A stretch of DNA of 64,000 nucleotides, from contig JAXLNO010004761.1 of NCBI GenBank assembly GCA_038087875.1, positions 62,001 to 126,000 of the forward strand. The letters run 5' to 3'. The translations under genes and the position numbers were made by a program. The notes beneath the pieces were generated by a model. That model was not told the DNA's origin. It worked only from the letters and a program-made list of their open reading frames with translations, and did not search any database. The DNA is from Malacoraja senta (taxonomy: Eukaryota). Below, piece after piece: positions 5,071 through 56,945 of the stretch (position 1 is its first letter; the number at the start of each line of letters is the position of its first letter).

Positions 5071-5348
5071 CAGCACGGAAACAGGCCCTTCAGCCCACAG
5101 AGTTTGTACCGACCAGTGATCACCCTGTACACTCGTACTATCCCACACACTAGGGACAGAATTACCAAAGGCAATTAATCTACAAACCTGCACGTCTTTG
5201 GAGTGTGGGATGAAACCGGACACCCGGAGGAAACCCACGCAGGTCATGGAGAGAACGTGCAAACTCTGTACAGACAGCACCCGTATTCAGGATGGAACCC
5301 GGGTCTCTAGCGCTGTGCGGCAGCAACTCTACCATTGCACCACCATGC
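5051..5348 (-). mobile_element. HE1-like tRNA-derived V-SINE
   Basis: tRNA-like head (gcaatggtagagttgctgcc...cccgggttccatcc), central V-domain, (taaac)n tail. Confidence 0.8.
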
Positions 5349-11813: not shown

Positions 11814-13680
11814 AGATACATAGATACATAGAAAATAGGTGCAGGAGCAGGCCATTCGGCCCTTCGAGCCTGCACCGCCATTCAATATGATCATGGCTGA
11901 TCATCCAACTCAGTATCCCGTACCAGCCTTCTCTCCATACCCCCTGATCCCTTTAGCCACAAGGGCCACATCTAACTCCCTCTTAAATATAGCCAATGAA
12001 CTGGCCTCAACTACCCTCTGTGGCAGAGAGTTCCAGAGATTCACCACTCTCTGTGTGAAATTTTTTCCTCATCTCGGTCTTAAAGGATTTCCCCCTTATC
12101 CTTAAGCTGTGACCCCTTGTCCTGGACTTCCCCAACATCGGGAACAATCTTCCTGCAAGTAGCCTGTCCAACCCCATAAGAATTTTGTACGTTTCTATAA
12201 GATCCCCTCTCAATCTTCTCAATTCTAGCGAGTATAAGCCAAGTCAATCCAGTCTTTCTTCATATGAAAGTCCTGACATCCCCGGAATCAGTCTGGTGAA
12301 CCTTCTCTGCACTCCCTCTATGACTATAATGTCCTTCCTCAGATTTGGAGACCAAAACTGTACGCAATACTCCAGGTGTTGTCTCACCAAGACCCTGTAC
12401 AACTGCAGTAGAACCTCCCTGCTCCTATGCTCAAATCCTTTTGCTATGAAAGCTAACATACCATCCGCTTTCTTCACTGCCTGCTGCACCTGCATGGCTA
12501 CTTTCAATGACTGGTGTACCATGACACCCAGGTCTCGCTGCATCTCCCCTTTTCCTAATCGGCCACCATTTAGATAATAGTCTGCTTTCCTGTTTTTGCC
12601 ACCAAAGTGGATAACCTCACATTTATCCACATTATACTCCACCTGCCAAATATTTGCCCACTCACCCAGCCCATCCAAGTCACCTTGCAGTCTCCTAGCA
12701 TCCTCCTCACAGCTTACACTGCCCCCCAGCTTAGTGTCATCCGCAAACTTGGAGATGTTGCCTTCAATTCCCTCATCTAGCTCATTAATATAAATTGTAA
12801 ATAGCTGGGGTCCCAGCACTGAGCCTTGCGGTACCCCACTAGTCACTGCCTGCCATTGTGAAAAGGACCCGTTTACTCCTACTCTTTGCTTCCTGTTTGC
12901 CAGCCAGTTCTCTATCCACATCAATACTGCACCACCAATACCGTGTGCTTTAAGTTTGTATATTAATCTCTTATGTGGGACCTTGTCGAAAGCCTTCTGA
13001 AAGTCCAGATACAACACATCCACTGGTTCTCCCCTATCCACTCTACTAGTTACATCCTCGAAAAATTCTATAAGATTCGTCAGACATGATTTACCTTTCG
13101 TAAATCCATGCTGAATTTGTCCAATGATTTCACCACTTTCCAAATGTGCTGCTATCCCATATTTAATAACTGACTCTAGCAGTTTCGCCACTACAGATGT
13201 TAGACTAACTGGTCTGTAATTCCCCGTTTTCTCTCTCCCTCCCTTCTTAAAAAGTGGGGTTACGTTTGCTACCCTCCAATCCCCAGGAACTACTCCAGAA
13301 TCTAAAGAGTTTTGAAAAACTATCACTAATACATCCACTATTTCTGGAGCTACTTCCTTAAGTACTCTGGGATGCAGCCTATCTGGCCCTGGTGATTTAG
13401 CGGCCTTTAATCCATTCAATTTACCCAACACCACTTCCCGACTAACCTGGATTTCACTCAGTTCCTCCATCTACTTTAACCCGCGGTCCCCTGCTATTTC
13501 CGACAGATTATTTATGTCTTCCTTAGTGAAGACGGAACCAAAGTAGTTATTCAATTGGTCCGCCATATCCTTGTTCCCCATGATCAATTCACCTGTTTCT
13601 GACTGCAAAGGACCTACATTTGTTTTAACTAATCTCTTTCTCTTCACATATCTATTAAAACTTTTGCAGTCAGTTTTTGC
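11814..13680 (-). mobile_element. CR1 LINE, 5'-truncated, with a long open RT frame
   Basis: 408-aa ORF at 12244-13470 with all RT motifs and a (ctatgtat)n tail. Interrupts an older repeat whose halves lie at about 11760-11813 and from 13681. Confidence 0.95.
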
Positions 13681-25262: not shown

Positions 25263-25350
25263 ATGAGGCCCAGGTTTTTCTGCAGCAGTTTGCCAGCTGG
25301 TTTGATGTTCGGTGTCTTTGTTTTCTTGCTTCGACCTGTTTCCACACAGA
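25263..25350 (+). CDS. Signal-peptide exon MRPRFFCSSLPAGLMFGVFVFLLRPVSTQ
   Basis: Acceptor tttcccacag ends at 25250, ATG at 25263, hydrophobic core LMFGVFVFLL, phase-1 donor cagA|gtaagt at 25351. Confidence 0.85.
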
Positions 25351-25499: not shown

Positions 25500-27990
25500 T
25501 GACTAGCAACTCAATGTTCCATGTTTCTATGGGAAAAAGATGGGGGAATTGCTCTATTAATCAGGGAAACTATCTTGTTGGCACTCAGAGTGGAGACTCT
25601 GGATGGTTTGTCCATTGAGGTGATATGGGTGAAAATTAGAAAGGTGCAAGCAATTCAACGGAATTGTACGAGAGGTCCCCCAAGAGTGAGCAGGAAATAG
25701 AGGAACAGATGTTAACACAGATTACTGAAAGATTACACAAATGGATGTCTTGGGGGGTGACTAATGGTATATTCAATAGGATGTTTTGTAACAGTTGTAA
25801 CAGTTGTGAATAGTGCAACGTGAGAAAGGAATCCAAAATGGACCTTGTGTTGGGAATGGGTCTGGCCAGGTGACTGATGTTTTAGTGAAAGAGTATTTTG
25901 GAGACAGTGAATACAACTCCATAAGTTTTAAAATTGGTTAGAATTGGGATAAGTCTGTTCTGTGCGACAAGACGTTAATTTGAGTAAGGCAAATGACACC
26001 ATTATTAGGCAGGAGCTTGGTAAGGTACACTCAGAGCAGTTGTTATTAAGTTACTCCAAGTCTGAGATTGACAATTGTCTGAAGGTCAGTTGATCCAAAC
26101 TCAAGACCGGCAAGTTCCAGTAAGGAGGAGAGATAAGACTGACAAAGTAAGGGAACCTGAGATGACCAAATAAATGTGTAAATTTGGTCAAAAATAGAAA
26201 GGAAACACATGCAAGGTTCAAGAATATGATAGCAGAGAGGGCCATTGAGGAATATAAAGCAAGGAGGCAAGAGCTCAAACGGGCGATTAGAAGGGAGAAA
26301 ATAGGCCACAAAATGGCTGTGGCGATTTGGAGTAAAGAAAGTTCCAAGGCTTCTTATACTTACATTAAAATCAAGATGGTAGACAAGGAGAAGGTAAACA
26401 AGGATAAATGAAGGAAACTGAAACTGGAGTTAGGGGATGTAGGTGAGGTGTCAGATAACTCCAGGGATAAGAGGAGCAAGGGAAAAGGAAAACAAAGGAA
26501 ATAAAATAAAATATGTCAGTAAAAAGGTGGGGTGGATTGTTTGGGGATTTGTTGCCTGAAAGTCAAGAATTCAATGTTCATACCATTAAGTTGTCAGATA
26601 CCCAAGAGAAATATGAAGTGAGATTTCTTCAGTTTGCATGTGGCCTCACTGGCAATGGAGGAGGCCAAGGACAGAAAGATCAGTGTGGGAATGGGAGTTA
26701 AAATGGTTTATTTGTTTAGAGAGAGAATTCAGCGAATTAAAGAACTGTGAGTCACATGACAATATTGGAAAGGATTCTTTGGGATATAATTGACTCCCAT
26801 TTGGAACAAAATAGATGAGGGGATTAAAGACAGTAGGCATGACTTTTACGTGGCATTGTCCACAATGATTTTAGTAAGGCACTTGGTAAAGTTCTCCATG
26901 ATAGACTGATGCTGAAGATTAATAAGCATGGGATTAACATTGAATTGTTTGTCAGGATTCAGAATGGGCAGACTAGAAAACAGAGGAAAAGGCAATATTC
27001 AGGCAGGAAATCTGTGACCAGTGGAGTTCTATATGGATCTCTGCCAGGACTACTGTCGGTCATGATTTAGACAAAGAATTTAAATGTAGATGGGTTGGTT
27101 AGTACATTAGTAGATGGGAACAAGATTGCTGCACTGTGAACAACGCTGTCAAAGTATCAAAGTATGTTGTAAAGTAATGAATGGGATATAGACCAGCTAC
27201 AGAAATGGGTGGACAAATGACAGATCAAGTTTAATCCAAGCATCTGTGAGGTGTTGCACTTTGGGAGGTTGAATATAAGGGGAAGATATACAATTAACGG
27301 CAAGGCCCTTAACAGCATTGGTGTACAGAGGGACCTTGGGATCCAAGTCCCAAACTCTCTGAAAATGGTAATACAGGTAGACAGCGTGGCAAAGAAGGCA
27401 GATGGCATGCCTTTGGTTGGATCATTGGGTATAAGAGTCAGGAAGTCAGGATGTGATGCAGCTTTGTAGGACTTTGGTTAGGCCGGATTGCAAGCATTGC
27501 ATGCAGTTCTGGATGCCCCGAAAAGATGCAGAGGCTTTGGAGACAGGGCTGAGAAGGTTTACAAGAATTATGCCTGTGTTACTGGATATTAGCTACAGGG
27601 AGAGGTTGAATAGACTTGGATTGTTTTCTCTGGAATGTTTGACATTGAAGTGAGGCTTGATAGAATTCTACCAAATTATGAGCGGCAAGGTCAATGTAGA
27701 CAGTCAGAATCTTTTCCCCAGGATGGAAATATCAAATACAAGAGGGCATGGGGGGTTTTTAGGTGAGAGAGGCAAAGTGTGAAGGAGATGTGAAGGACAA
27801 GTATTTTACAGTGGTGAGTGGCTGGAACATGCTGCTGGTGGTGTTGGAGGGAGATGTGTGAATGGGATTTAAGAGACTTTTGGATAGGCACATGGACATG
27901 CAGGGAATGGCGAGATATGGATTATGTGCAGGCAGATAAGAGTTGGTCGTGGCATTATGCTCGACATCGACCTTGTGGGCCGAGGGGCTT
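25500..27990 (+). mobile_element. Old, heavily degenerate CR1 LINE in intron 1 of the Ig locus
   Basis: Residual peptides LHFGRLN, QRDLGIQV, RTLVRP and ERLNRLGLFSLE, plus a CR1-type tail. Confidence 0.75.
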
Positions 27991-28421
27991 GTTCCTGTGC
28001 TGAACTGTTCTATGTTGTAAAGCACTGTGGAATGAGGAGCAGGCAGGGAGGCAGGAGCATGTTTATTTTGTTCCAGGTCTGTCCGACAAGGGCCGGGGAT
28101 GCGGTGTGTACAGGATCGGCCTGGTCTCCACCCACATCAGGAAACCCCGTCACAGGGAACACCGACTGGAGACCCGACACAAACGCCCTTCCACCTCCGT
28201 CTTTCTCCCACTCACTCTTCTCATGTCATGAAGTATCCCTGGATCAGGCCAGGTTATTCCAGCCAGCCATCTATTCACAAACTGTGTCCGTCTCACTGGA
28301 GGTTCTGTGGGAGATCAAAACATTCTGGAAATAAATGAAATTCAAAATTAATAATTACAGACATGGAGTGGAGGAAATGTGCTTAAAATGTTAATTCCTA
28401 CATTTTTCCTATTTCCAACAG

Positions 28422-28757
28422 AAATCAGAAATCAGATTTATTTCTTGGATAATGGAGGCGGCATTGTGTTAAAAGGACCGGACAATCCTGCGAGTGTTGT
28501 CTGGGAATGGGAACCACACTCAGGGCCGGGAAAACACGCTGTGGTAACTCTCCGCGCCGAGAACAAGGGCTTGTGGAGCAGAGAGCGGGACAATGGCTGG
28601 GGAAACATAGACAAGAACCAGGAGGTGGATGTGGATCACCGTACTGGTAATCTGGCAATAAACAAACCCACATTTAAATGGTCAGGATTGTTCACTTTGA
28701 CCGAAACACATCCGAGGAACCAGATCCTGAAACGATATGAAATATATGGGATCAAAG
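28422..28757 (+). CDS. Ig domain 1, V-like with no cysteines (KIRNQIYF...VLKGP...WEWEP...GNLAINKPTFKWSGLFTL...YGIK)
   Basis: Acceptor tttcctatttccaacag, 336 nt, open frame, phase 1-1, donor aaaG|gtgagt. C-strand Trp and E/F-strand pattern retained. Paralogous to exon 33317-33661. Confidence 0.85.
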
Positions 28758-28959
28758 GTGAGTGGGCGAGACACGGATCCACAATATGTTTCTCTGTAAA
28801 TAATGTCACGTGTAATGATGAAATATGGCGGGAATTGTGAGACTTCTTCCACCCGATGAATCTCCCAATGATACAATTGGGGGAAAGATTTGTCTTCATT
28901 GATTCTGTGGGCCTGCGGTGAGATTGTCGAGTGACACTGCTGCTCAATGTTACCCAGTG

Positions 28960-29935
28960 AACCAGATCCATGCCTCACTTGGTTGAGATCCCAGAGGAAG
29001 TCCTTCATCTGTGGAACTTACACTGGTGGCAGAGTTCCCACCTTGAGGGCGGTTGGGGGAGACATGACAGGGACAAATGGTCAAACGTATCAATCCAGTT
29101 ACATCTAAATGTTGTTTGCATTCACTGGTCAGAGTGTAGCCGGTTGCACCAGCAGTGTCACGGTGAACAGCCGGCATTTACCTGTGTGAATATGAACAGC
29201 TTCAGGACTTCCACCTATGCGTTTCACAACGAGGAATTCCACAACTTGCTGACAGTTCTTGCGGTGAATCTGCCAGCGCTCCCCTTCACTTCTCCACGTG
29301 GAGACCAGGACTGGAGCAGGAATATGCTGATATTCCCGGACACTGGCACTGGGAAAACTGCTCCCGGATCCGGTGCCTGCAGGGGTGGAGACTCTTCAGG
29401 AATCAAAACTAATCGTTATTGTAGAATTAGACTCTTTCATGATAAAAAATTGAAATATTCAATATTAATAAATGTGTTTACTTCTAAAGGTTGGTGCCAC
29501 TCAGAACCATTCCAACAGCATGGGAGCTTTAGCCGAGGATGAACAAGGCCTTTGCATCCTGTAGATAATTCTCCACAGGTGTAAAGGGATTGGGATTTGT
29601 TCATTGCTCTAACGTTTGCCGAGATACAGTGAATGAGGTTGGATGCAACTACTTTGATCTTCATGTTTTCCCCAGCGAAATTTCCATTGCAGAATATTCT
29701 AGGCTGCAGGAGTACGTGCTGAGGGACACACTGAAGATCAGTGCAGACAAAGCAAAGGCATTGTGGAATAGAACTACAGTCCATGGACCTTCTGCCACCA
29801 GTCCCCGCCGAGCTAAATCTAATGTACAAACCTCTGAAACACATGAATTGGTATAATCTCAGGATGCAGCATGAGTGTCAAGAGTGTTATGTACACAAAA
29901 TGTGTGAACACTGCCAAAGTGAGGATCAATAACAC
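28960..29935 (+). mobile_element. Degenerate L1/Tx1-like LINE 3' part
   Basis: Peptide LQEYVLRDTLKISADKAKALWNRTTV resembles Tx1-type ORF2 C-termini (from recall). Confidence 0.5.
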
Positions 29936-30306
29936 TATGTCTGTGTAGTCTGGACAATATCAAATTCAGATTTAGGTTCATATTAGTTCATTGTCATATA
30001 CATTTGGGTAAAACACATTCATTGTTCAGATAAAGTAAATTATAATAAAAGGTACATTAAAAAATGCAACAAAAACAATACAGCAGAATGGTGCAAAGAT
30101 TGCAGTGCAGTCTGAAGTAATGCAAAATAAAACTAACGATTATGAAAATGCCCCAGGGGATGATGAGTGTTTGTGGCTCTGGGCTTGGACTAGCTGGAGT
30201 TTAGAAGAATGAGGGGCGGGTCTAGGTTTTAAGTTGAGTTGAGCCCAGTCATTGGACTTGTACTAACCACTACTCACTCTGAATCTCATTGATCTGTTTT
30301 TCACAT

Positions 30307-30577
30307 TCGAGGCAAGTCCACAGAGGCCTCTGCTGGGCAGTGACGTCACACTCAGCTGCACAATCTCCAGACTCTCAGATACAGTCAGTCTTCACTGGAG
30401 ACACATCGACTCATCCCAGCAGAACAGGAGCAACACTGATCAGATCCGCCTGGATAACACGGTCTATCTGATGGTTCAACACGTTACAGTGGAGGATGGG
30501 AAGCTGTATGATGTGTGATTTGCAGGAAAACGGAAACATTGTTCACACAAGTAATGGAGATTTTACTGTAAACAACA
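30307..30577 (+). pseudogene. Ig domain 2, C2-like, disabled
   Basis: Aligns to exon 34704-34976 (VEASPQRPLLGSDVTLSCTISRLSDTVSLHW...). Acceptor reads cacAT instead of cacAG. Length is 271 nt (3n+1). An extra base near 30510 gives TGA at 30516-30518; removing it restores LYxCDLQENG. Donor aaca|gtgagt is intact. Confidence 0.85.
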
Positions 30578-31627
30578 GTGAGTGTAAACACCTCCCATTG
30601 GATATCAAGTAGACACTTGTCTCACGGTGCTTCTTGTAATATTATGTGTGCGCCCTGTGAAGAACTGTGGCAGTGACCAACTGCTTTCCAGTATAAAATG
30701 CTGCAATGATCAGGGAGAAGTTTACAGAAAGTCTCTCTGTGGAGCAGCTGCCTGCTTGTCTCTGTGTGACAGACACACAGCACAGGAGGGGGTGTCTTTC
30801 TGTAACCATTGTTCAGTCAAGTATTTTGTCAGTTTATCTTGCCATCAATGCTCCAGTATCTGAGACTGAGATACTGATACAGGACTCACGTCAAAGTGTC
30901 AGATAGAAAGTGTAGTCACCATGACAACCACCAGCACTTGCTGCTCACACTCACACTGGGGGTCCCGGCCCACACATTAGCACTGAACAACAATCCATCC
31001 CCTCTCCCCTCACTGACCCTTCTCTCCGAGTCTGGTGTTGCTTGAAGTGATTCCACCTGCTGCAGACTCGGGTGTCAGATCAGCATTCAGCTGGGAGCAG
31101 GACCCGGGAACAGGGAAGGACAGGGAATCAATGGGTGTGAATGGGAGAGGGATGGTGGGAATAATGGGAATGAAGGGACGGGAAGACCCGACCCACTTGA
31201 AGTGCCAACCTGTCCGGGTCAGTCCCCGCGCAGGCATCCTCTGGGCTGCTTCTGTCCGCAGCCTGAACCTGCACCATCTCCTGCAGACAGACTGACAGAG
31301 ACATTCACCTCCGAGACCGCTCTCGGGAGTCTCCTGGAGGTTTCATTCCATCCCGGGAGATTCCCGGACAGTCCGGGTGTGGGGGCGAACGTAATGTTGA
31401 AATGTAGAGTGGAATATCCAAACTTCACTGCAATTTACTGCCGTACAGGACATTGTATTTTATAAAGATCTGATGAGTTTAGTGCGGCATTCATGAAAGA
31501 TGTTACATTTGAAACTTGATCAGCTGAACAAAACACCACGAATGTTTATAAGAATACGATTGAGAATCTATGTATGGCACGGTAACTGTAATACTGAAAG
31601 GAGTTATCCTCTGTCTCTCTGATACAG

Positions 31628-31972
31628 ATTTATATAATGGGAAATACACACTTTACCGCTCCAGCACAGATCACAGTGAACTTCACCTAGGTTGTTCTGG
31701 GAGTTATGGTCGTAGCTATTCCCGTGCTCACTGGACCTGGGCACCTCTTCACCTTCATCAACAGCAGAAAGTAATAGCATCTGCAGAAGGTTCTCAGCCC
31801 AACAATGTCAAAGGGACCGACTTCGGGAATCGACTGGTGACCTCAGGGAAACCCTTCGATGGCAAGGATTTCAGTGTGAGGATTGTTCCCGTTTTGTTTC
31901 AAGATGCCGGAGTTTACGCTTGTTTTCTGGAATCAAATCGATTTCCCACCATTTATCTAATCACAGTAAAAG
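31628..31972 (+). CDS. Ig domain 3, V-set with Cys pair (ELHLGC...HWTW...DFSVRIVPVLFQDAGVYAC)
   Basis: 345 nt open frame, phase 1-1, canonical splice sites, classic DxGxYxC motif. Confidence 0.9.
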
Positions 31973-32050
31973 GTATGAGACAGAATGTTGCCACTGAGTT
32001 TACTGATGAACTTATTGTTTAAAATGTAAACAACCTGCTTGTTTCCACAG

Positions 32051-32311
32051 TCACAGCTGAACCGTCTGATGCAGTGACTGAGGGAGACACCGTTACCCTG
32101 ACCTGCTCTGTGTCTCACGTCATTGGGTCAATGAGACTGGTTTGGATCAATGGCGATGGCAAAAGTGTTGGAGAAAAGACACTGACTGTGGAAGAGAAAT
32201 CACCGAGTCTGGTTATTCAGAAAGCTGAGAGAGGCAGAGGGAACTGGAGATGTGGTTTGTTTCATCAAGACCTGCCACGGCTTTTTGTCCCGTACTATCA
32301 GGAGCCCCGTG
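32051..32311 (+). CDS. Ig domain 4, C2-set with WxC F-strand (VTLTCSVS...LVWIN...GNWRCGLF)
   Basis: 261 nt open frame, phase 1-1, acceptor tttccacag, donor G|gtaagt. Confidence 0.9.
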
Positions 32312-33316
32312 GTAAGTGATAAGGGTTTGTTCTTCATACTTAGAGTCATGATTGAGTTTTGATGTCGCTTATTGATCCTGAAATTTGAGTGGAATATTTT
32401 CTTCCAGTTTGAGTGGTCTAACTATGTTATGATCAATGAATTCTCAAATTTCAAATAACACTTCCCGAACCCCACTTCTCCCCCCCCTTCATTGTGCACG
32501 CATTTATCCCACCACCCAGTTATCCTATTCTCTTCCCTTCCTCTTTCAACTCATCTCCCACCCCTTCCTTGCAGTTTTCCTTTTATGTTCTTGCTCCACT
32601 TCCACCCATATCCCTCCCTCTGTTACTGATCTGACTGTAGATCAGTCAGTATTAGTTGACCTGATCTACGTCATGTTTTACTGCATGCCGCTGTGTACTC
32701 AAGCAGTCATCATATTATCTAGTCTGTTAGTCCAGCGTCTAGTTAGATTCGTTGCTGAGCTTGAGCTTACAACACCTAACTATTTGAGCTCTGTGTGTTT
32801 ACTATAACAAACAACTTCTTCTTATGTATGGATCCTGTTATTACACATGTTTATACTGACAACCTTTTGTCTCCATTTCACCCCTCCATTTTGTCATTAT
32901 CTCCATCCATCTACTCATCACCATTCCCCACCTATATCCACCTATCACTCACCATGCTTTGTCTCATGCCTACTTCCCTTCCCCAGTTGTCACTCTCCCA
33001 TTCCATCAGCCTGATAATGCATCCTGACATGAAACGTCATCAATCCATTCCCTCCACAGATGCTGCCTGACCCATTGAGTTTCTCCAACACTTTGCGTTT
33101 GATGAACATTCCACAATCTGCAGTTTCTTGTGTCTCCATGGAGACCCACTGGTCAGCGTGGACAGATTGCTGCAGAGGGCCTGTCTCCATGCTGTTCCAT
33201 GATGATGAATTATAACGTACAACTTAGTAAAGATTAATTCTCTGCAATATTGCTAATGACAAGGTCAGTGATAAATGATTGTCCAACATTTACACATTTG
33301 TTCTCTTTTCCTACAG

Positions 33317-33661
33317 GAAGAGGACATTCTATTTACTTTTTCCATCAGGAAGGCAACTTTGTATTGAAAGGACCAGACAGTCCTGGAAATGGCCCCATTG
33401 ACTTGGAATGGAGGCCACACTCAGGGCAACAAACCACAAAGCGATTGGCCACTTTCCGCAGAGAAGATCAGCAGTGGGCCGTACAATGGAGTGATGAGTA
33501 GAATCAAATACCAGGCATCTCCCAGAGGATGCATGCGGACTGGGGTACCCTTAATCTGAGGATCAGGATGCCCACATTCAAACTTGCAGGACTGTTCACC
33601 TGGAATCAGACACAGCCCGCTGGCAAACTCCTGAGACAGTGGGAACTATTTGGGATTAAAG
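33317..33661 (+). pseudogene. Ig domain 5, Cys-less V-like paralog of domain 1, with an in-frame TAG
   Basis: 345 nt, phase 1-1, canonical sites. Reads GRGHSIYFFHQEGNFVLKGP...WSDE*NQIPGISQRMHADW...PTFKLAGLFTW...LFGIK, with the stop at 33499-33501. Confidence 0.85.
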
Positions 33662-34075
33662 GTAATAGAGTCATAGTGTCACACAGCACTGAAACAGGCC
33701 CTTTGGCCCAATTCATCCATACTGACCAACTACCCATCTAAACATCCCATTTGCCCTCATTTGGCCCATATTCCTTCAACCTTTTTTTCTATATACCTGT
33801 TTAAATGCCCTTTAAATGCTGCACCTGCATCAAACACTTCCTCTGCTTGATCTTTCCATAAAGTATGTTCATGTACCACTCTTTTTGTCAAAAAACTGCC
33901 CCTAATATTAAGGTGTATATCAAATCTGCCCCTCTCACATTAAACATGGACTATCTAGTTTTTGATTCCCCAACCCTGGAAAAAAGACCATGTGCGTTTA
34001 CTATAGATATGCCTCTCATGATTTTATTCACTTCCATATAATCTCAGTTAAAGACATCCAAGAAATATAATCAGT

Positions 34076-34103
34076 CTGAAGAAAGGTCTCAACCTGAAAT
34101 GTC
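34076..34103 (+). ncRNA. Minimal type-I hammerhead-ribozyme-like motif with a complete core
   Basis: CTGAAGA, extra A, stem II AGGT-CTCA-ACCT, GAAA, T, GTC. Stems I and III are very short, so activity is unproven. Confidence 0.4.
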
Positions 34104-34143
34104 ACCTATCTATGTTCTACTATACTAAAAAACATCCCTACCT

Positions 34144-34580
34144 GGAAGCGTTGATGTGGGAGACGAGGGGGGCGAGGGGGACAGGTGGTCACTACCTGGA
34201 AGTGTTGATGTGGGAGACGAGGGGGCGAGGGGGACAGGTGGTCACTACCAGGAAGTGTTGATGTGGGAGACGAGGGGGCGAGGGGGACAGGTGGTCACTA
34301 CCAGGAAGTGTTGATGTGGGAGACGAGGGGGCGAGGGGGACAGGTGGTCACTACCAGGAAGTGTTGATGTGGGAGATGAGGGGGCGAGGGGGACAGGTGG
34401 TCACTACCAGGAAGTGTTGATGTGGGAGACGAGGGGGCGAGGGGGACAGGTGGTCACTACCAGGAAGTGTTGATGTGGGAGACGAGGGGGCGAGGGGGAC
34501 AGGTGGTCACTACCAGGAAGTGTTGATGTGGGAGACGAGGGGGCGAGGGGGACAGGTGGTCACTACCAGGAAGTGTTGAT
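34144..34580. repeat. 53-bp G-rich minisatellite, 8 copies plus a partial copy, in the Ig5-Ig6 intron
   Basis: Units start at 34144, 34198, 34251, 34304, 34357, 34410, 34463, 34516 and 34569, and are nearly identical. Confidence 0.95.
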
Positions 34581-34703
34581 GACATCACTGAGCACGGTAG
34601 CTCAACATTCAGCCGACTGTCTGTCTGCTGGAAAAAGACAATTCTGCCCACAGTAGTTCAGAAAGCTGTTGGTGAACTGAACCACATGTGTCTGTTTCCA
34701 CAG

Positions 34704-34976
34704 TTGAGGCAGACTCACCGAGGCCAGTGATGGGCAGTGACATCACCCTCAGCTGTACCATCTCCAGACTCCCAGATACCATCAGTCTTCAGTGGAAACC
34801 AAGAGGCTCATCTCAGCAGAACAGGAGGAACAACGCTGATCAGATCCGTCTGAATAACGCCGTCTATCTGATGATCCAACACGTTGGAGAAGGATATCCT
34901 AATCTGTACACATGGGAAGTGCAGGAAAATAGCTCCATTGTTCTCACTGGAGACACCAATGTTGAAGTGGATCAGG
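34704..34976 (+). CDS. Ig domain 6, C2-like, second Cys replaced by Trp (ITLSCTIS...LQWK...LYTWEVQ)
   Basis: 273 nt open frame, phase 1-1, canonical splice sites. Confidence 0.88.
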
Positions 34977-35296
34977 GTGAGTCCAAAGCTGCCTTGCAGC
35001 AGGTATTAAATAGTTCTTGATACCAAACTGTTCCACATGTTGTATAGTGAGCACTGACTCCACCCGTGGGCTTCCACACTGCAGGATGTGGACATTGCCT
35101 TTACCCTGGGACATGGTGTAAATATAAAATGGTGGCACTAAGATTGATGGAGCCACACAGGAGAACCAAGGGATTCATTTCAGTTCACCTGCATGAATCA
35201 AAGAGAATAATATCCAGTGATGGAAATAACATCTAGTTTTCAGTGTATAACTGAAGAGGAAAATGTGAACTAATTCAAGTATAAATGCAGAAGAAA

Positions 35297-35960
35297 TACC
35301 AGAATCAGAATCAGAATAACATTTTATTGGCCACGTAATCATACACAAGGAATTTGACAGTGCTTTGCTCGCATATGGTAAAAACACGATATACAGCAGA
35401 CAATTAAAAATAAAACATTATAATTTAAACATGTGAAAATAAAGTACCGGAGTAAAAAGAGGCTACCGACTTTTGGCTGTTGAGTAGAGCTACGGCTCGT
35501 GGGAAGAAGTTGTTTTTATGTCTGGCGGTGGCAGCTTTGACAGTCCGGACTCACCTGCCAGAGGGAAGTGATTCAAAGAGTTTGTGGCCAGGGTGAGAGG
35601 GGTCAGAGATGATCTTGCCCGCTCGCTTCCTGGCCCTTGCAGTGTACAGTTCATCAATGGAGGGAAGGTTGCAGCCAATAACCTTCTCTGCTGATCGGAC
35701 GATTCGCTGCAGACTCCAGGTGTCGTGCTTGGTGGCTGAGCCAAACCAGACCATGATGGAGAAGGTGAGGACAGACTCTATGATGGTAGTGTAGAATTGG
35801 ACTATCATTGCCTGTGGCAGGTTGTGTTTCCTCAGCTGCCGCAGGAAGTACATCCTCTGTTGGGACTTTTTGACTGTGGAGTCGATGGTGGCCTCCCATT
35901 TAAGGCGCTTGGAGATGATGATTCCGAAGAAATTAAATGACTCCACAGTTATGACTGTGG
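35297..35960 (-). mobile_element. Rex1/Babar-type LINE 3' fragment
   Basis: KKSQQRMYFLRQLRK...IESVLTFSIMVWFG...DPSHPGHKLFESLPSGR and a (attctg)n tail. Short tail copies also at about 7813-7915, 42670-42860, 50905-50990 and 51250-51325. Confidence 0.8.
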
Positions 35961-36124
35961 TGTTGTTGAAGATGTGGGGGGAGGGGAGGGGGAACTCTAC
36001 AATCAGGAGGGGAGGATTGAGTCTACAATCAATTCCACTGTCTATAGAGCACTGAGCTTCAGGTTGTTGCGATGTCAACAGGACACCAGCTTTATGATTA
36101 GGGTGACTTGGACATCGTGCTGAA

Positions 36125-36505
36125 GTAAGCATGCAGGTACAGCAGGCAATGGAGAAAGCAAATGGCATGTTGGCCTTCATAGCGAGATTTGTGTATAGGA
36201 GCAAAGAGATCCTACTGCAGTTGTACGGGGCCCTGGTGAGACCACACCTGAAGTATTGTGTGCAGTTTTGGTCTCCTAGTTTGAGGAAGGACATTTTTTC
36301 TATCGAGGGAGTGCAGCATAGGTTCACGAGGTTAATTCCTGGAATGGCGGACTGACATATGATGAAAGAATCGATCGACTGTGTTTATATTCACTGAAAT
36401 TTAGGATGAGAGGGGATCTTATAGTAACGTATACAATTATTAAGGGATTGGGCAGGCTAGATGCAGGAACAATGTTCCCCATGTTGGGCGAGTCCAGAAC
36501 CATGG
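36125..36505 (+). mobile_element. CR1 LINE fragment
   Basis: MQVQQAMEKANGMLAFIAR...[13 protein letters not shown]. Confidence 0.88.
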
Positions 36506-36614
36506 GACCCAGCTGACATCCCAGAGCCGGGGGTTTGTCCCTGTGGAAACTCACAACATTGTATCTCGGCGTGTATGGAAATCTAATTCTTTGTTCCCTG
36601 TCCCTCTCTTGCAG

Positions 36615-36953
36615 ATTTACATAACAAGACGTACACAGTTTATCGCTCAGTCACAGATCACAGTGAACTCGACCTGATTTGTGAAGCTTCTCCTGAGCTC
36701 AGCGAAACCAAATGGACTTGGAAATCACCACGTTTCCAGAATCAAGAGAAGGAAATAGCTTCTTCTCACAGGTCTGAGCCGATACATGTCGACAGGAGCT
36801 ACTTTGGGAATCGACTGGAAACCACAGAGGGAAATGTGAATGGCAAGAATTTCCATGTGAGGATTGTCCGCGTGCAGTTTGCAGATGCCGGAGTTTACAC
36901 ATGTTCCACAGGATCAAATAAAAATGTGAACATTGAACTAATCACAGTTACAG
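36615..36953 (+). CDS. Ig domain 7, V-set with Cys pair (ELDLICEA...KWTWK...NFHVRIVRVQFADAGVYTC)
   Basis: Translated by hand because it is absent from the ORF track. 339 nt open frame, acceptor ctctcttgcag, donor acaG|gtagga. Paralog of domain 3. Confidence 0.9.
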
Positions 36954-37758
36954 GTAGGAGACCGGTTGTTACTACTTTCAAGAATTAAGTTACTGGTGTA
37001 GAGTTTCTAATCTGAGTACAGACAGCAATGTCAGCAGAAATTTCCAAGTTTGATGAATTATTTTACCTACAGAGCTTCCTCTTCAACTTATTTGTATTTT
37101 GCTGAACCCAAAATCTGCCCTAAACAACATTATTGGGAATCATATCAAATGTTATTTTCATTTATTTTGCTGAAAACACATTGTTTTATACATAAGAGAG
37201 GGAATATGATGAAATGTGATTCAGATAGGTGCAAATGAGCTTCTATCGGAAATATTTAAAAATCATTCAATTTCTCTTAACACATTCCCCAAGTTTCTTT
37301 GACCCCAAACGACACATCCTAATTTTTGAAGGCTCACTCGATGCTTAAAACTGAGTGTATTTTGTGGAATTTATCGGTTAATATTTTCCTGGATGAGTGT
37401 TGTGGCCGAAACTGTGGCCAGAGACAATGATGTGGGCATTGGTTGCTCTTTGTATAATTAGTTCAAAACTGTTGTGAATGATTATGGAAAAGACACTTGG
37501 AGAGGTACATGGATGGGAAAGGTGCAGAGGGATATGGGCCAAATGTGGGAACATATTTTAGATGGAGCATCTTGGGTGGCATGGATGAGTTGGGCTGAAT
37601 GGACCGAATTGTTTCATGCCGTATGACTATGCCTCTAACTCTTGATGTGTAATATAATTTTCACACTTAGAACGCCAGATACTGGTGTCAAAGTACTGAG
37701 AAGAACACAACACAATCCAGACAAAATTCATTGTTTTACGATTTTCTTCTTTCCACAG

Positions 37759-38028
37759 TCACAACTGAACCATCTGGCGCAGTGACTGAGGGAAAAAAGA
37801 TTACCCTGACCTGCTCTGTGTCTCATGTCACTGAGTCATTGCGACTGGTTTGGATCAATGATGAAGGCAAAGTTGTAGAGGAGAAAAATCTCATGCAAAC
37901 AAAGCAGGAGGACAATTCTTTGCAGCTGATTATTGCAATAGCTGATGGAGTAAGAAGGAAATGGACATGTGGTTTGTTTCAACAAAGCACAGCCAAGGTT
38001 TTCATTCTATATAATCTGCAGGTGAACA
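37759..38028 (+). CDS. Ig domain 8, C2-set with WxC (ITLTCSVS...LVWIND...KWTCGLF...LYNLQVN)
   Basis: 270 nt open frame, phase 1-1, donor aacA|gtaagt. Paralog of domain 4. Confidence 0.9.
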
Positions 38029-38644
38029 GTAAGTTTCTTAGCCTCTGCTCTTCATTATCTCGACACAGAGTTCTTGGCACGTTGCTATTCTTTTTGGATA
38101 ACTTTTAACATTCCATGTCTTACTGCAAGTAGAGCTCAATCATAGACATTTCCTTCAAACTCCTTGTCCATGCCTATAAGGTCACTTCAATTGTAAGTAG
38201 TCCAGGTCTCTGAAGCACATGTGAGCACATGGATCACTACTGCTGGCAGACCACTGACCAAGACCTGTGTTGGCCATCTCATTGAAGGTGATCGGGAATT
38301 TCATCATCAATGTCTGTCCTTGTTGATAAGTGTCTCCACAGGTATGAAAACTGGTCCAGTAGTATGAAAACCAGTGTGTCACTGTGAACCTTTTTGTCAG
38401 AGGTCAGTATAGTAAGGTGGGCAGCTTGGTGGAAGATCTTTGCCATAACAGCCAAACTGTGCCCCTTAAAGATCACAAAAGTAGTGAAAATCATCTTAAA
38501 AATAATTGTACAAGTTTCTTTCACCTGTTCTGATGCTGTAAAACATTACAGCGCTTGAAGCATCCACAGTAACTTCACCAAAGGCTGCCATGTCAGAACA
38601 GAAGATGTGGGGGAGGGAATACTGATGTCTTCACCTTGTCTGAG

Positions 38645-38950
38645 TATGATGGCTCAGTGGTAGGGTTGCTGCCTTACAGCGCCAGGGACCCGGGTTCAAT
38701 CCTGACTACAGGTGCTGTCTGTATGGAGTTTGTACCTTCATCCCGTGCCCTGCGTGGGTTTTCTCCAGGATTTCCGGTTTTCTCCCAAATTCCAAAGATG
38801 TACAAGTCTGTATGTTAATAGGCTTGATTTAATTGTATGTTGTCCCTGGTGTGTGTTGGATAGTGTTAGTCTGTGGGAATCGCTGGTTGGTGCGGACTCG
38901 GCGAGCAGAAGGGCCTGTTTCCGCGCTGTATCTCTAAACTAATCTAAACA
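38645..38950 (+). mobile_element. HE1-like SINE
   Basis: Full-length copy with a taaac tail. Confidence 0.8.
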
Positions 38951-39711
38951 TGCCCTTTCCTCCCAATCCCACCCATCCATTAATCCCTGCCCTTCATGGG
39001 GTACCAAGCCTCGGAGAAAGACGTTTTGTACAATGCTGACAGAAGGCAAAGCACTGATCCCTAACAGAGGAAGATCCTGTAAACACCCAGGCACAAAGAA
39101 ACAATCTCCACCACACATAGATCAATGAAGAGTCAGTGAAGCACAACGTGGAAAGTATCAATGTCCCAACAGGAACACTTTAATTCCTCACAGATAATGA
39201 CATCATCCAATCATAGAATTGTGGAATGGTTGTAGCACAGAAGGTGGCCATTTGACCCATCATATCCATGCTAACTCTCATCCAGAGCAACTCGCTAATT
39301 CTACCCCCTCTCCTTTTGCCATTACATTGCAGCTTTTTCATCACTATATATTTCTCCAATTCTCTCTGGAAAACCACGATAGAACCCAGCTCCCCAACTG
39401 ATGCAGACAGTACACTTCAGACTCCAACTACCTGCTGCCTAAAAAGATTTTCCTCAAGTCATTCTAGCATGTTTTCCCCTTTATTTTAAACCTATAACTT
39501 TTTGTGCTCAGCCTTTCCACTGAAGGGAGCATCCTTCCACAATCCATTCTGTTCAGACTGAATAAATGATGCATAAATGAACAATGATGCCATTGATGTG
39601 ATGAAAGAGCATTATTGACTCTTGTCTTCAAACTCTCTCTTCAGTGTGCCATGGTAATAACTGGACAGAGAACACCATAAATAGAATCTCAATGATACCA
39701 ACCATGTTTAC

Positions 39712-40030
39712 TGTTTAGTTTAGTTTAGAGATACAGCGCGGAAACAGGCCCTTCGGCCCACCGGGTCCACGCCAACCAGCGGTCCCCGCATATTAACACT
39801 ATCCTACACCCACTAGGGACAATTTTTACATTTACCAAGCCAATTAACCTACAAACCTGTAAGTCTTTGGAGTGTGGAAGGAAACCGAGGATCTCGGAGA
39901 AAACCCATGCAGGTCCTGGGGAGAAAGTACAAACTCCGTACAGACAGCACCCGTAGTTGAGATCGAGCCCGGGTCTCCGGCGCTGCATTCACTGTAAGGC
40001 AGCAACTCTACCGGTGCGCCACCGTGCCGC
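39712..40030 (-). mobile_element. HE1-like SINE
   Basis: Full-length, well-preserved copy. Confidence 0.82.
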
Positions 40031-41917
40031 ATTCATTGTGTCATCTCTTTGTGACATGTTTACAGTTTGACTTGCCGATTCAACTGCTTCAATGCACCAT
40101 CTGATGTGATTATTTGACTGAACACAGCAACCTGCTCCCTGATGGTCACTGTGTGGTATAGGTTGGTGTTATTAATCCTTGCTCCTGGCGAGCAGCAGTC
40201 TCCCCCTGGGACAGGACAACAGGGCTCTGACTACAGTCAGCTGAGAGTCCACTTAGGAATGAAGACTTTGGTTGTCCTCTGCCTGTGCCTCAGTGCCTGT
40301 AAAACCCTGCTCCGTCAGCCGCTGCACCAAGGGAGAAGCCACCCCCACCCACACCCACTCCCACTGTGGTGTCCCCACCTCCCAGATTGGAAATCTGTGC
40401 TCCCCGCTGAGCAGAGGCCTCCCCATGTACGCTCATCTAGCACAGTCTCACTATGGAGCAGAACTGAAGTTGAACTTTATTTTACAAGGGTCGCGCACAC
40501 CAGCCTCTCCATCCTTTGGCCTCATTGCAGACTGATGCTTTTGGGTGTTGAGCTGTCCTTAAAGGGCAGGAGATATCAATCAGTGAGTGAATAGATTAGG
40601 TGGTGTGTGGAATTAATGCATGGATCAACCATCTCCAATTTTACACTAAAAACACATGAAGATGTGTTCATTAGGGTTGCAATAATAATGTGTTCAACCT
40701 CATTGACATCAGTAGGCAATGGTTACATGCACAATACAGTTTTAGTACTTGAAGACCAAAATTAATTTTAGGAGTTGAAAATCCGAATGAAAAATAATAA
40801 TAATAATCAGCAGGACAGATAGGAACTGTGAAAGAGGAACAAGTCCAGCCATGATCGCATTAAATGGCGGTGCTGGCTCGAGGGGCTGAATGGCCTACTC
40901 CTGCACTTATTGTCTATTGTCAAAGATCCTTTCTATGAATCTGACAACGTTTTATTCATCATAAAACATGAATCACTTCTTTCCCTTTCCACGGATACTA
41001 CTCAAACGGCTGAGTATTTCTAACCTTTACAGTTCTTGTGCTCCTGGTTAGAGAGGATTGAAGCTGGAGGGCAATATCCACTCTGTTGTCAGCAGTGCTC
41101 ATTCAACCATTGTTCCAGGCTTAGACTATGATAAACATTTGTCCACTGTACAGTGGGAAGTATCACAGCAGAATCAGCTACTTTATCAGCCAACCATCAG
41201 CTCCCATCTCCTGCCTGAGGAAGTCAGCTGATTGTAACCAAGAAATGGAAACTTGTGAGAATGTTTACAGTCTATAACTGATGGCTACTGAGGCAAGTTG
41301 TGGCTCTCTGATCTTTCTGTGTAAGGTCAATTAATCTGGAAAAAAAAGACACAATGTGCTGGAGTAACTCAACGGGTCAGGCGGAATCTCTGGAGAACAT
41401 GGGTAGGTGAGGTTTTGGGTCGGAACCCTACTTCAGACTAAAGGGCTGTTCTGCAATGATCTGACCACGTGGTGATTGCGTCACCATCCTCTGTGTAAAC
41501 CATTATCAAATAAACATGCCAGAAGTTGAAGTATAGCTAGTGTAGTCATGTAGAAAATATGGTCTCCAATTTGCCCTCAATATGTTCCTATTTACTGAGG
41601 GATGAATATTGGACAGGAAACCAGGAGACCAAGGTATCTCCACTGCACTTTGGTGATTCAAACTTAAAGTGAAAACTTTGCCTTGTGTACCATCCTAATA
41701 TGGTCATAATTTAGGGAACTGTGTTTCCATGGACTCTGATTTCATACACAAGGTCTTATCCCACCATTAAATGTCTCTGACATACATCTGAAGCAATGTT
41801 CCTGGTCATTCTGGTGGATCTCATCATTAATGGGGTACAGTTTAAACACTGGATTGCTGCTTCTTTAAAATCAAGCCGGATTAAAGTCTTAATCAGAAAA
41901 TAATACTTATTTTCCAG

Positions 41918-41995
41918 AAATTAATGTGACCCCAGTACCTGAGATGAGCCATGTTACTGAATACATGTGTGTGAGTAGGAAGACAAAGCAAGAAG
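41918..41995 (+). CDS. Cytoplasmic exon with ITSM-like TEYMCV (INVTPVPEMSHVTEYMCVSRKTKQE)
   Basis: Acceptor cttattttccag, donor gaaG|gtaaat, 78 nt, open in phase 1-1. Confidence 0.7.
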
Positions 41996-43851: not shown

Positions 43852-43908
43852 ATACAGAGGAAGATATTCATTATGGATCCATCTCTTTCCAGCCAAAAGC
43901 ATCTGGTG
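43852..43908 (+). CDS. Cytoplasmic exon with ITIM IHYGSI (DTEEDIHYGSISFQPKASG)
   Basis: Acceptor ttatttccacag, donor gtG|gtaaaa. An alternative in-phase donor lies 3 nt upstream. 57 nt, phase 1-1. Confidence 0.75.
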
Positions 43909-44102: not shown

Positions 44103-44285
44103 TGAGTGTGTTCTGCTCCCCTAAACTACAGGAAGTGTGTTCTGGTCCCCTAAACTACAGGAAGTGTGTTCTGGTCCCCTAAACTACAGGGAGTGTGTTC
44201 TGGTCCCCTAAACTACAGGGAGTGTGTTCTGGTCCCCTAACCTACTCTAAGTGGGTTCTGGTCCCCTAGCCTACTCTGAATGGGT
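44103..44285. repeat. 29-bp minisatellite (gtgtgttctggtcccctaaactacaggaa), about 6 copies
   Basis: Periodicity directly visible. Confidence 0.9.
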
Positions 44286-45370: not shown

Positions 45371-45414
45371 GCAGCAGCGATAATACACTGTCCTCCAATC
45401 AAGCATCAGGCACT
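45371..45414 (+). CDS. Cytoplasmic spacer exon (GSSDNTLSSNQASGT)
   Basis: Acceptor ttttattacag, donor act|gtaagt, phase 1-0, which matches both neighbouring exons. Confidence 0.7.
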
Positions 45415-45546: not shown

Positions 45547-45609
45547 AACCTTGTTTCTTCAAAGGAAGATGAGTCATCTGTCATCTATGCTGAAACAGTA
45601 AAAACATAA
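45547..45609 (+). CDS. Terminal coding exon NLVSSKEDESSVIYAETVKT*
   Basis: Polypyrimidine acceptor tttctttctctttcag, phase 0, TAA at 45607-45609, tyrosine in an acidic context typical of receptor tails. Confidence 0.7.
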   Translation, partial: NLVSSKEDESSVIYAETVKT

Positions 45610-55145: not shown

Positions 55146-56647
55146 CTGTACTCAGACACTCCCACAACTCCCCCTTTTATACACAGCAGCTGACAATTTT
55201 CTAATCAGCTTCAATCAAGCTGATTACCACATTCACCATTCGCCCACCAGTGGCCAATCAATGTTTGTTGCACACATCACGATATCCTCCTGGGGCAGTG
55301 TTTGTCTGCAGGACAATAATTGCCCTCCGACTTGTTGCTTTTTACACAAAGTGGCTGCTTGCATTTCCTTAAGTCAGAGACGACACACAGAAACAGAATT
55401 AGGCCGTTCGGCCCTTCGAGTATACCCCACCATTCAATCATGGCTGATCTATCTCTCCCGCCTAACCTCATTCTCCTGCCTTCTCCCCATAAGCCCTGAC
55501 ACCCGCACTCATCAACAATCTATCTATCTCTGCCTTAAATATATCCACAGACTTGTGGCCTCCACCGCCATCTGTGGCAATGAATCCCACAGATTCACCA
55601 CCCTCTGGCTAAAGAATTTCCTCCTCATCTCCTTCCTAAAGGAAAGTCCTTTAAATCTGAGGCTGTGCCCTCTGGTCCTAGACTCTCCCACTAGTGGAAA
55701 CATCCTCTCCACGTCCACTCTATCCGGGCCTTTTCACTGTTCGGTGACGTTTCAATGCCCCCCCCCCCCCCCAATCTTCTAAACTCCAGCGAGTACAGGC
55801 CCAGCGCCGACAAACGCTCATCGTACGTTCACCCACTCGTTCCTGGGATCGTTCTTGTAAACGCTAACTCTTTTGTCTTGCTGATGTTGAGGGATGGATT
55901 GTTATCCTGACCATAGGTGCAGGAGTGGGCCATTCGGCCCTTCACGACAGAAGGTTCTCAATGTCTTTCCCATATTCTATCTCATCTTTGCTGCTCATGT
56001 GGCTGAAATACTGTTCTGACCAGTGGACGGACCTCTGGATCCCACTGGCCTGAGACCCGGCCACAAGTTGTGGGTGACAAGGTCATGACCCCGAGGGACA
56101 TTGGTGTCAAGGGTCACGGTGGAGGGAATGTTCTGACCAATTCTAACGTCTGAGAAGTGAATAGTGGTGGATTTGTTAATTCATCATGGCTGAAGCAGGT
56201 GGGCTCACTTCTGACTAGACTTTACTGTGGACATTTAAACAGGAAAAGTAAACTTTCTTTATTAACAATGAATGACCCAGAGAAAGGAGAATGTTACTCT
56301 TGGAAGTTCATAGAGTCACAGCATGGAAACAGGCCCTTCCTTCGGCCCAACTTGCCCACCCCGACCAACATGGCCCCATCTACACTTGTCCCACCCCGAC
56401 CAACATGCCCCATCTACACTAGTCCCACCTGCCCGCGTTTGGCCCATATCCCTCCCAAACTGTCCTATCCAAGTGTCTCTTAAACATTGTGATAGTCCCA
56501 GCCTCAACTACCTCCTCCAGCAGCTCATTCCATACACCCACCACCCTCTGTGTGGAAAAGTTGCCCCTCAGATTGACATTATTAATGTGAACCATTTGTG
56601 CACAACTCTGCTGGTGTGAGTAATAAATGAAATGATAGCAAAAATAC

Positions 56648-56945
56648 ACAGTTGTGCAGCGGTAGAGTTGCTGCCTCACAGCGCCAGAGACCGGGTTCCA
56701 TCCTGAATACGGCAGCTGTCTGTACGGAGTTTGCACGTTCTCCCCGTGACCGGCGTGGATTTTTCTCCGGGTGCTCCGGTTTCCTTCCGCATTCGAAAGA
56801 CCTGCTGGTTTGTAGGTTAATTGGCTTCTGTAAAATTGTCCCTAATGTGTGTAGGATGGAGTTAGTGTACGGGGTGATCACTGGTCGGCGATGACTCGAT
56901 GTGCCGAATGGCCTGTTTCCGCGCAGTATCCCTAAAATCTAAACA
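56648..56945 (+). mobile_element. HE1-like SINE
   Basis: Full-length copy. Confidence 0.8.

Follow-up and report, generated by a model that had tools for sequence, protein, structure and literature searches.

A tandemly repeated four-domain immunoglobulin module in a skate receptor gene and its likeness to CD4 and LAG-3

We analysed a 64,000-nucleotide stretch of the Malacoraja senta genome (contig JAXLNO010004761.1, positions 62,001 to 126,000 of the forward strand; hereafter the window), in which eight immunoglobulin (Ig) domains, each encoded by a single exon, lie on the plus strand between positions 28422 and 38028. All positions are those of the whole 64-kb stretch. The exon borders are phase-1 splice sites. 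The domains, Ig1 to Ig8, are of four types: A (Ig1 and Ig5), B (Ig2 and Ig6), C (Ig3 and Ig7) and D (Ig4 and Ig8). A-B-C-D appears to be a four-exon, four-domain building block composed of a V-like domain without disulfide, a C2-like domain, a V domain with disulfide and a C2 domain with a WxC motif. We consider it probable, for the following statements taken jointly, that the stretch is the ectodomain-coding part of a single gene extending from a signal peptide at 25.26 kb to a tail at 45.6 kb, that this gene is a member of a large, unnamed family of receptors of the Ig superfamily (IgSF) in cartilaginous fish and some teleosts, and that the modelled fold of the module and the sequence of its C-D half are nearer to CD4 and LAG-3 than to any other solved or Swiss-Prot protein. 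The gene is neither CD4 nor LAG-3, and the copy in the window is probably a pseudogene.

The signal-peptide exon (25263..25350, plus strand) begins with MRPRFF and ends with VSTQ in phase 1; its ATG and GT donor could be read, and it is 79-91% identical to the skate relatives P0044, P0072 and P0001 (tblastn). tblastn searches of the whole window found no upstream Ig exon that would shift the register. Ig1 has no Ig exon ahead of it and follows the signal-peptide exon at 25263-25350, and so comes first among the domains. Ig1 (28422..28757, 336 nt, phase 1-1, on the plus strand like all exons that follow) is V-like, rich in Trp and without a Cys pair; it had no Pfam match and is 76% identical to A. 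radiata P0001. The first-pass annotation, made from the letters of the stretch, had set a disulfide-less, Trp-rich V domain at the distal tip, which agrees with the position of Ig1 directly after the signal-peptide exon, and its limits for the array coincide to the base with where Ig1 starts and Ig8 ends. Block 1 continues with Ig2 (30307..30577, 271 nt), a broken exon delimited by DNA alignment with Ig6, then Ig3 (31628..31972, 345 nt), a V-set domain with a Cys pair, and, after an intron of just 78 nt, Ig4 (32051..32311, 261 nt), a C2 domain with WxC.

Block 2 consists of Ig5 (33317..33661), which has an in-frame TAG inside, Ig6 (34704..34976, 273 nt), Ig7 (36615..36953, 339 nt), a V-set domain with a Cys pair (Pfam V-set, E 8e-8), and Ig8 (37759..38028, 270 nt), a C2 domain with WxC. 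The cysteine pattern given earlier held for A (no pair), C (a pair) and D (WxC). Ig6 keeps the B-strand Cys only. In the block-2 B domain of skates (Ig6 at about 34900-34910; P0077, P0044, P0057 and P0063) the F-strand Cys is replaced by Trp, giving YTWEV where the family has YxCEV, so the usual disulfide is impossible in that domain. The stretch between Ig8 and the tail (38029..41917) is the position of the transmembrane (TM) and juxtamembrane exons in the relatives. The tail is encoded by four exons. The first (41918-41995) carries TEYMCV, an immunoreceptor tyrosine-based switch motif (ITSM), and the second (43852-43908) IHYGSI, an immunoreceptor tyrosine-based inhibitory motif (ITIM). The third (45371-45414) is followed by the fourth (45547-45609), in which VIYAET, a terminal ITIM off by one, precedes the stop. 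Identity of the tail exons to their counterparts in A. radiata P0031 and L. erinacea P0077 is 85-95%.

Comparison of exon translations with the whole window (tblastn) revealed the pairwise relationship of the two blocks. Ig1 and Ig5 are 40% identical over 128 amino acids (E 5e-20), Ig2 and Ig6 63% over 70 (E 6e-25), Ig3 and Ig7 48% over 130 (E 1e-31), and Ig4 and Ig8 51% over 98 (E 2e-27). Each exon has exactly one other copy within the 64 kb, and no further copies were found. The paralogous pairs, the motifs quoted for them and the tandem duplication of a four-exon block, all proposed in the first-pass annotation, were thus borne out, with one copy of each exon per block. At the DNA level the exons alone align between the blocks (68-76%) and the introns do not, which indicates that the block duplication is old. 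Profile comparison within the module (hhalign) paired A with C (E 1.6e-8) and B with D (E 3e-7), the cross pairs being weak. The module itself therefore looks like the product of an older V-C2 duplication.

Ig1 aligned poorly with two pieces of Ig5 and was used alone as the library query. A HMMER search of 1.8 billion representative proteins with Ig1 returned 32 proteins, and a family-profile search added 69 relatives. All of these matches were from sharks, rays, skates and elephant fish. Weaker matches and a search seeded with an eel protein extended the range to eels, tarpon, salmonids, mudminnow and mormyrids. Nearly all relatives are annotated as 'uncharacterized'; the few automatic names are 'obscurin-like' (as in the nurse-shark deposit AGQ17915.1), 'VCAM1-like' and 'CD276 homolog'. 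We found no literature naming the A-B-C-D family; the comparison did not extend to sequences of the skate modular domain immune-type receptors (MDIR). The window domains are 74-95% identical, domain by domain, to proteins of L. erinacea, A. radiata and R. longicauda.

Parsing of the relatives with domain profiles yielded 26 proteins of the type ABCD and 13 of the type ABCDABCD, as well as shorter variants. A 15-domain catshark model consists of BCD followed by three ABCD units, and is probably a 16-domain protein with its N-terminus cut. In most models that start with A, this domain lies at residue 20-35, directly after the signal peptide. The order in the window, a leader followed by A B C D A B C D, matches the family order of signal peptide-A-B-C-D in whole-unit repeats. 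The module would thus be present twice in register.

The intact relatives would be type I membrane proteins and fall into two groups. Those whose tail bears ITSM-like, ITIM and terminal ITIM motifs would be inhibitory, through recruitment of SH2 phosphatases; those with a Lys in the middle of the membrane span and a short tail would be activating, through an adaptor with an ITAM (immunoreceptor tyrosine-based activation motif). A set of ITIM-tailed forms and short-tailed forms bearing a Lys in the membrane span is what paired inhibitory and activating receptors usually show. The relatives P0034, P0023 and P0006 (skate, sawfish and horn shark) share a conserved Lys-bearing span, xIWIxxLxxYLxxKLxVAxGLICY, and a short tail without Tyr motif. 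To judge from these motifs they are candidate activating partners of the ITIM forms. Of the features that mark the family at its membrane end, a TM span with an ITSM/ITIM tail or a Lys-bearing span, the window copy has the tail exons and no recognisable TM exon.

A maximum likelihood tree of 71 whole modules, rooted with the eel modules, placed the block-1 and block-2 modules in separate sister clades. The membrane-proximal modules of the eight-domain proteins form one clade (support by the Shimodaira-Hasegawa-like approximate likelihood ratio test, SH-aLRT, 85), and the distal modules together with the four-domain proteins form its sister (SH-aLRT 97). The window blocks fall one into each clade, nested inside the skates. 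Because sharks and rays are present in both clades, the step from four to eight domains took place before these two groups separated, and it duplicated the entire ABCD unit; the arrangement would have been kept in many species since before that divergence. The proximal clade has short branches in species-tree order, the distal clade long branches with lineage-specific copies. For instance, identity to Mobula is 33% when Ig1 is compared with its first A domain, and 71-83% when Ig5 is compared with its second. The fast-evolving outer block may bind the ligand, and the conserved inner block may act as a stalk.

Single sequences of the window domains and two-sequence profiles, compared with PDB and Pfam, gave generic Ig matches and none for Ig1/5; deep family profiles were needed. 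The A profile matched, among solved structures, the Fc epsilon receptor (E 0.02) and sodium-channel beta-4 best. It matched no CD4, LAG-3, CD2, SLAM or CEACAM structure, and no SLAM, CD2 or CD48 chain appeared at E values up to 10. The best matches of B were titin, NCAM and the constant domains of Ig light chains; those of C were MXRA8, pIgR and PD-L1. The D profile aligned end to end with D2 of human LAG-3, including WxC and the next strand (E 2.4e-5). With the whole-module profile LAG-3 was second, behind a theoretical model of CEA (48.9 bits). The C-D part of this profile matched LAG-3 D1-D2 with 27 bits and D3-D4 with 20 bits, and C matched CD4 D1 (E 2e-6); its A-B part matched neither CD4 nor LAG-3.

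Structure comparison was based on an AlphaFold model of a little-skate module, built from an alignment of 57 modules (predicted local distance difference test score, pLDDT, 89; predicted TM-score, pTM, 0.88). A single-sequence model of Ig1 (pLDDT 36) was unusable. The module model shows two rigid V-C2 rods, A-B and C-D, with a hinge between them, and single long strands (101-116 and 317-329) span the A-B and C-D borders. A strand running across a V-C2 border is rare and typical of CD4 (PMC10768021). Foldseek searches of PDB with the model returned LAG-3 and CD4 first (E 3e-18 to 1e-16), all others having E values of 1e-15 or worse. Among Swiss-Prot entries LAG-3 and CD4 occupied ranks 1-17, with the whole module aligned in register, and IGSF8 and Ly-9 came next. 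VIA-align also gave CD4 and LAG-3 as the best matches to the module, C-D superposing as a rigid pair on CD4 D1D2 and on LAG-3 D3D4. Single V domains formed a plateau in VIA-align: A lay near NITR11, NTB-A, 2B4, CD48 and the T-cell receptor (TCR) V domain, and C near CAR, nectin-1 and CD4 D1.

The first-pass annotation had gone further. It read Ig3-4-5-6 as a CD4-ordered unit, D1-D2-D3-D4, between two half-units, so that a circular permutation, or duplication out of register, would have brought a D3-like V domain without disulfide to the tip. We consider this very improbable. The ectodomain is made of two whole family units, and the A-first order is ancient: A follows the signal peptide in most models that include it, plain four-domain and eel proteins among them, and the domain before the membrane span is D, not B, as is the case with D4. 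Full-length CD4 and LAG-3 align with the module in register. The expected affinity of Ig1/5 to D3 was detectable neither by profile nor by structure. A match of Ig3/7 to D1 and of Ig4/8 to D2 was indeed seen (C with CD4 D1, D with LAG-3 D2), but neither is exclusive. C-D also matches LAG-3 D3-D4, and the LAG-3 D3D4 pair picks out C-D with the highest identity observed, 25%. Moreover, the Cys-pair pattern, from which the permuted order had been read, varies among CD4 and LAG-3 orthologues. A better match of Ig1/5 to CD2, SLAM or CEACAM N-domains had been named as evidence against the CD4-type reading; by profile no match to these was found, and the structural neighbours NTB-A, 2B4 and CD48 tie with NITR and TCR V. 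The description as a CD4-type four-domain cassette stands at the level of fold and for the C-D sequence, and fails in that the gene is not CD4 or LAG-3 and A-B has no sequence match to them. As a whole the earlier interpretation is partly supported; the lesions in Ig2 and Ig5, the missing TM exon and the position of the signal-peptide exon were not mentioned in it.

The copy in the window carries several lesions. In the DNA alignment the AG acceptor of Ig6 stands opposite AT in Ig2. Ig2 also has one A too many, at 30511; the resulting +1 frameshift runs into a TGA at 30516-18. Ig5 is interrupted in frame by a TAG at 33499-33501, a position held by Tyr (SDEYNQ) in all skate relatives. If all exons are spliced, translation ends at residue 211. 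A TM or juxtamembrane exon was sought in 38029-41917 by tblastn with parts of P0077, P0063 and P0012, which gave chance-level matches only, and by a hydrophobicity scan, which gave none; this segment has no N gap. With the acceptor loss and frameshift in Ig2, the nonsense codon in Ig5 and the missing TM exon, the copy as assembled cannot yield a receptor of this kind. Two inverted copies of a sequence resembling a short interspersed element (SINE) lie where the TM exon would be expected, at 38573-38830 (plus) and 39725-40032 (minus), and further SINE-like copies were seen at 5065-5286 and 56585-56890.

Contigs from four public sequencing runs were compared with the window over 28400-33700. They are 90-95% like the window and thus come from relatives or paralogues. 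These contigs have TAC at 33499-33501 and no extra A at 30511, and the spliced ones have their A-B, B-C and D-A joints at the predicted borders, the D-A joint being 32311|33317. No run matched the window at 99% or above, and none is on record as RNA.

We also considered that the gene might be intact, the stop, the frameshift and the acceptor being assembly errors or a private null allele and the TM exon being too diverged for detection, or that it might encode a secreted eight-domain protein. Joining Ig8 directly to the first tail exon keeps the reading frame, which fits a secreted form, and A. radiata P0031 also joins its D domain straight to the tail without a membrane span (tail 85-90% identical, with the same VIYAET end); outside Ig2 and the one TAG, every exon is open and has good splice sites. 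Against these points stand four independent defects, the intact states in all relatives' contigs and the lack of any N gap from Ig8 to the tail; assembly errors are, besides, an unlikely source of a substitution or of an insertion outside a homopolymer. In A. radiata the best matches are a number of short, partial gene models whose locus numbers adjoin (LOC116966230, 231 and 233 among them), one of the models likewise joining a D domain directly to the tail. An intact gene appears improbable, and most likely the copy is a paralogue in decay within a gene cluster that evolves by birth and death.

Several observations weigh against our overall interpretation. The decay is slight: if Ig2 is skipped, the TAG is the one remaining stop and all other exons are open, and a null allele and a recently dead gene would look alike at this stage. 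The assembly is the source for the TAG, the extra A and the AT acceptor, no run from the individual that supplied the window having been found. As to the likeness to CD4 and LAG-3, the CD4-specific Pfam families PF05790 (C2-set) and PF09191 (CD4-extracel) were not hit by the window exons or by eight relatives, which matched generic Ig families only. Sequence similarity to CD4 and LAG-3 is weak (14-25% identity), so that the link is one of fold with weak sequence similarity; TM-scores for the whole module are only 0.30-0.38, many V domains tie when domains are compared singly, and the profile scores of CEA, pIgR and MXRA8 are in the same range.

Such figures invite the view that the likeness is generic, that any V-C2-V-C2 protein would rank so, and that the family is closer to SLAM/CD2, CEACAM, B7, pIgR/CD300-like receptors or the skate MDIR. 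We regard this as unlikely, though by no means negligible. LAG-3 and CD4 are ahead of Ly-9, IGSF8, pIgR and B7-H3 by three to four orders of magnitude in E value and hold the first 17 Swiss-Prot ranks. The only solved domain that aligned with D from end to end is LAG-3 D2, with the rare WxC in common, and C-D fits CD4 D1D2 and LAG-3 D3D4 as one rigid pair. None of 128 relatives that carry a source name is called MDIR, SLAM or B7; the sole automatic names of this sort are one 'CEACAM1-like' and one 'CD276 homolog'.

Ly-9 (SLAMF3) resembles the module in its N-terminal V domain without disulfide followed by C2, in its tandem V-C2-V-C2 duplicate and in its ITSM tail, and by structure A and A-B have NTB-A, 2B4 and CD48 among their closest neighbours, tied with NITR and TCR V. 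Unlike Ly-9, the module has a normal Cys pair in its third domain; Ly-9 gave no sequence-profile match and ranked below every CD4/LAG-3 entry of Swiss-Prot. The 4Ig form of B7-H3 (CD276) is similar in that a V-C exon block was duplicated in tandem to V-C-V-C; it gave weak profile matches to C and D, and one skate relative bears the automatic name 'CD276 antigen homolog'. However, B7 V and C domains all have Cys pairs, WxC and an ITIM/ITSM tail are lacking, and the structural rank of B7-H3 is 37. The skate MDIR reportedly form a large multigene family (Cannon et al. 2006) with four types of Ig domain in varying numbers; some members have a charged TM and others ITIMs, and they distantly resemble pIgR/CD300 and FcR. 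C matches pIgR, and A weakly matches the Fc epsilon receptor. No retrieved relative is named MDIR.

The likeness to CD4 and LAG-3 themselves extends to a V-C2-V-C2 ectodomain of four Ig domains, arranged as two rigid rods with a strand running from V to C2, and to WxC in the last C2 domain. Shark CD4 and LAG-3 have one exon per domain (PMC10768021), as does the window gene. The differences are equally clear. CD4 and LAG-3 have WxC in strand F of both D2 and D4; the W and C of D are nearly invariant in the module, but the B consensus is YxC. The first V domain of the module lacks a Cys pair, and its sequence shows no likeness to D1 or D3 that could be detected. The LCK-binding motif of the CD4 tail, Cx(C/H) (PMC10768021), is absent from the window tail and from the tails of the relatives, which have TxYxxV and IxYxxI instead. 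LAG-3 has (F/Y)xxL(D/E) in a tail encoded by a single exon, whereas the window tail has no such motif and four exons. Unlike CD4 and LAG-3, the module family comprises many genes, its members having 4, 8 or 16 domains and putative activating partners, and sharks possess separate true CD4 and LAG-3 genes (PMC10768021). The tail motifs, the second domain without WxC, the multigene nature of the family and the fact that sharks have CD4 and LAG-3 are the reasons why we identify the gene with neither.

Teleost G6F-like, the thrombocyte collagen receptor, is a type I membrane protein with four Ig domains (PMC3528668). Its tail carries YxN and an ITAM (PMC3528668), both absent from the window tail and the relatives' tails, where ITSM and ITIM are found instead. 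The structural neighbours of the module in the ESM-Atlas include 'g6f-like' and CD4 clusters, 'g6f-like' clusters being the nearest (TM-scores 0.45 and 0.39); a feature search there returned generic Ig clusters only. None of the relatives found by sequence is named G6F-like. Ohashi et al. (2010) reportedly noted a resemblance of G6F-like to CD4 and LAG-3.

The data fit either homology in register or an independent V-C2 duplication. We tentatively suggest, at somewhat less than even odds, that the A-B-C-D family is a third, ancient and unnamed branch of the CD4/LAG-3 (perhaps G6F-like) lineage, which cartilaginous and bony fish would have inherited from their common ancestor. C-D would have kept ancestral CD4/LAG-3 features and A-B would have diverged; an expansion of paired receptors and the multiplication of whole units to 4, 8 and 16 domains would have followed.

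Several repeats lie within the gene. A minisatellite in the Ig5-Ig6 intron (34138-34581; 53 bp, 8.4 copies, 98% identity) is open in all three frames and could pass for coding sequence. A segment of the Ig1-Ig2 intron (29629-29871) is 85% identical to the C-terminal 78 residues of the A. radiata model P0001, which consists of a leader, an A domain and the piece matching this segment; it has no Pfam match and is probably an exonised repeat, as its contig depth was very high in all runs. A 29-bp tandem repeat (5.7 copies, 44105-44268) lies in an intron between tail exons. Retrotransposon remnants with reverse-transcriptase-like frames occur in and around the gene, the Ig6-Ig7 intron included: 35551-36327 (minus), 27221-27650 (plus), 8263-10542 (plus) and 12247-13470 (minus). 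One of them matches an ALKBH8_N-type tail domain of long interspersed elements. At the GC-rich end of the window a 413-residue open reading frame (60961-62199, minus) encodes at least nine C2H2 zinc fingers (zf-C2H2, E 6e-56) and is unrelated to the Ig gene. Outside the Ig gene the window holds transposon remnants and this zinc-finger frame, which are not informative on synteny with the neighbours of CD4 or LAG-3.

A single duplication of a V-C2 pair is believed to underlie CD4 and LAG-3. Few outgroups are available for testing such an origin, and they are disputed, the lamprey 'CD4-like' molecule being one example (PMC10768021). The locus itself is of more modest value, being a damaged copy; the interest lies in the family. 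It is old, occurring in sharks, rays, chimaera, eels and salmonids, it has the CD4/LAG-3 fold, the junction strands and a WxC C2 domain in common with these receptors, and its own V-C2 pairs are still recognisably paralogous. Such a combination would serve comparative immunologists testing the V-C2 duplication idea. If the family is indeed a third branch of the lineage, it would provide an outgroup for testing the origin of the V-C2-V-C2 ectodomain of CD4 and LAG-3. The family would also add unstudied paired inhibitory and activating receptors to the immune repertoire of cartilaginous fish.

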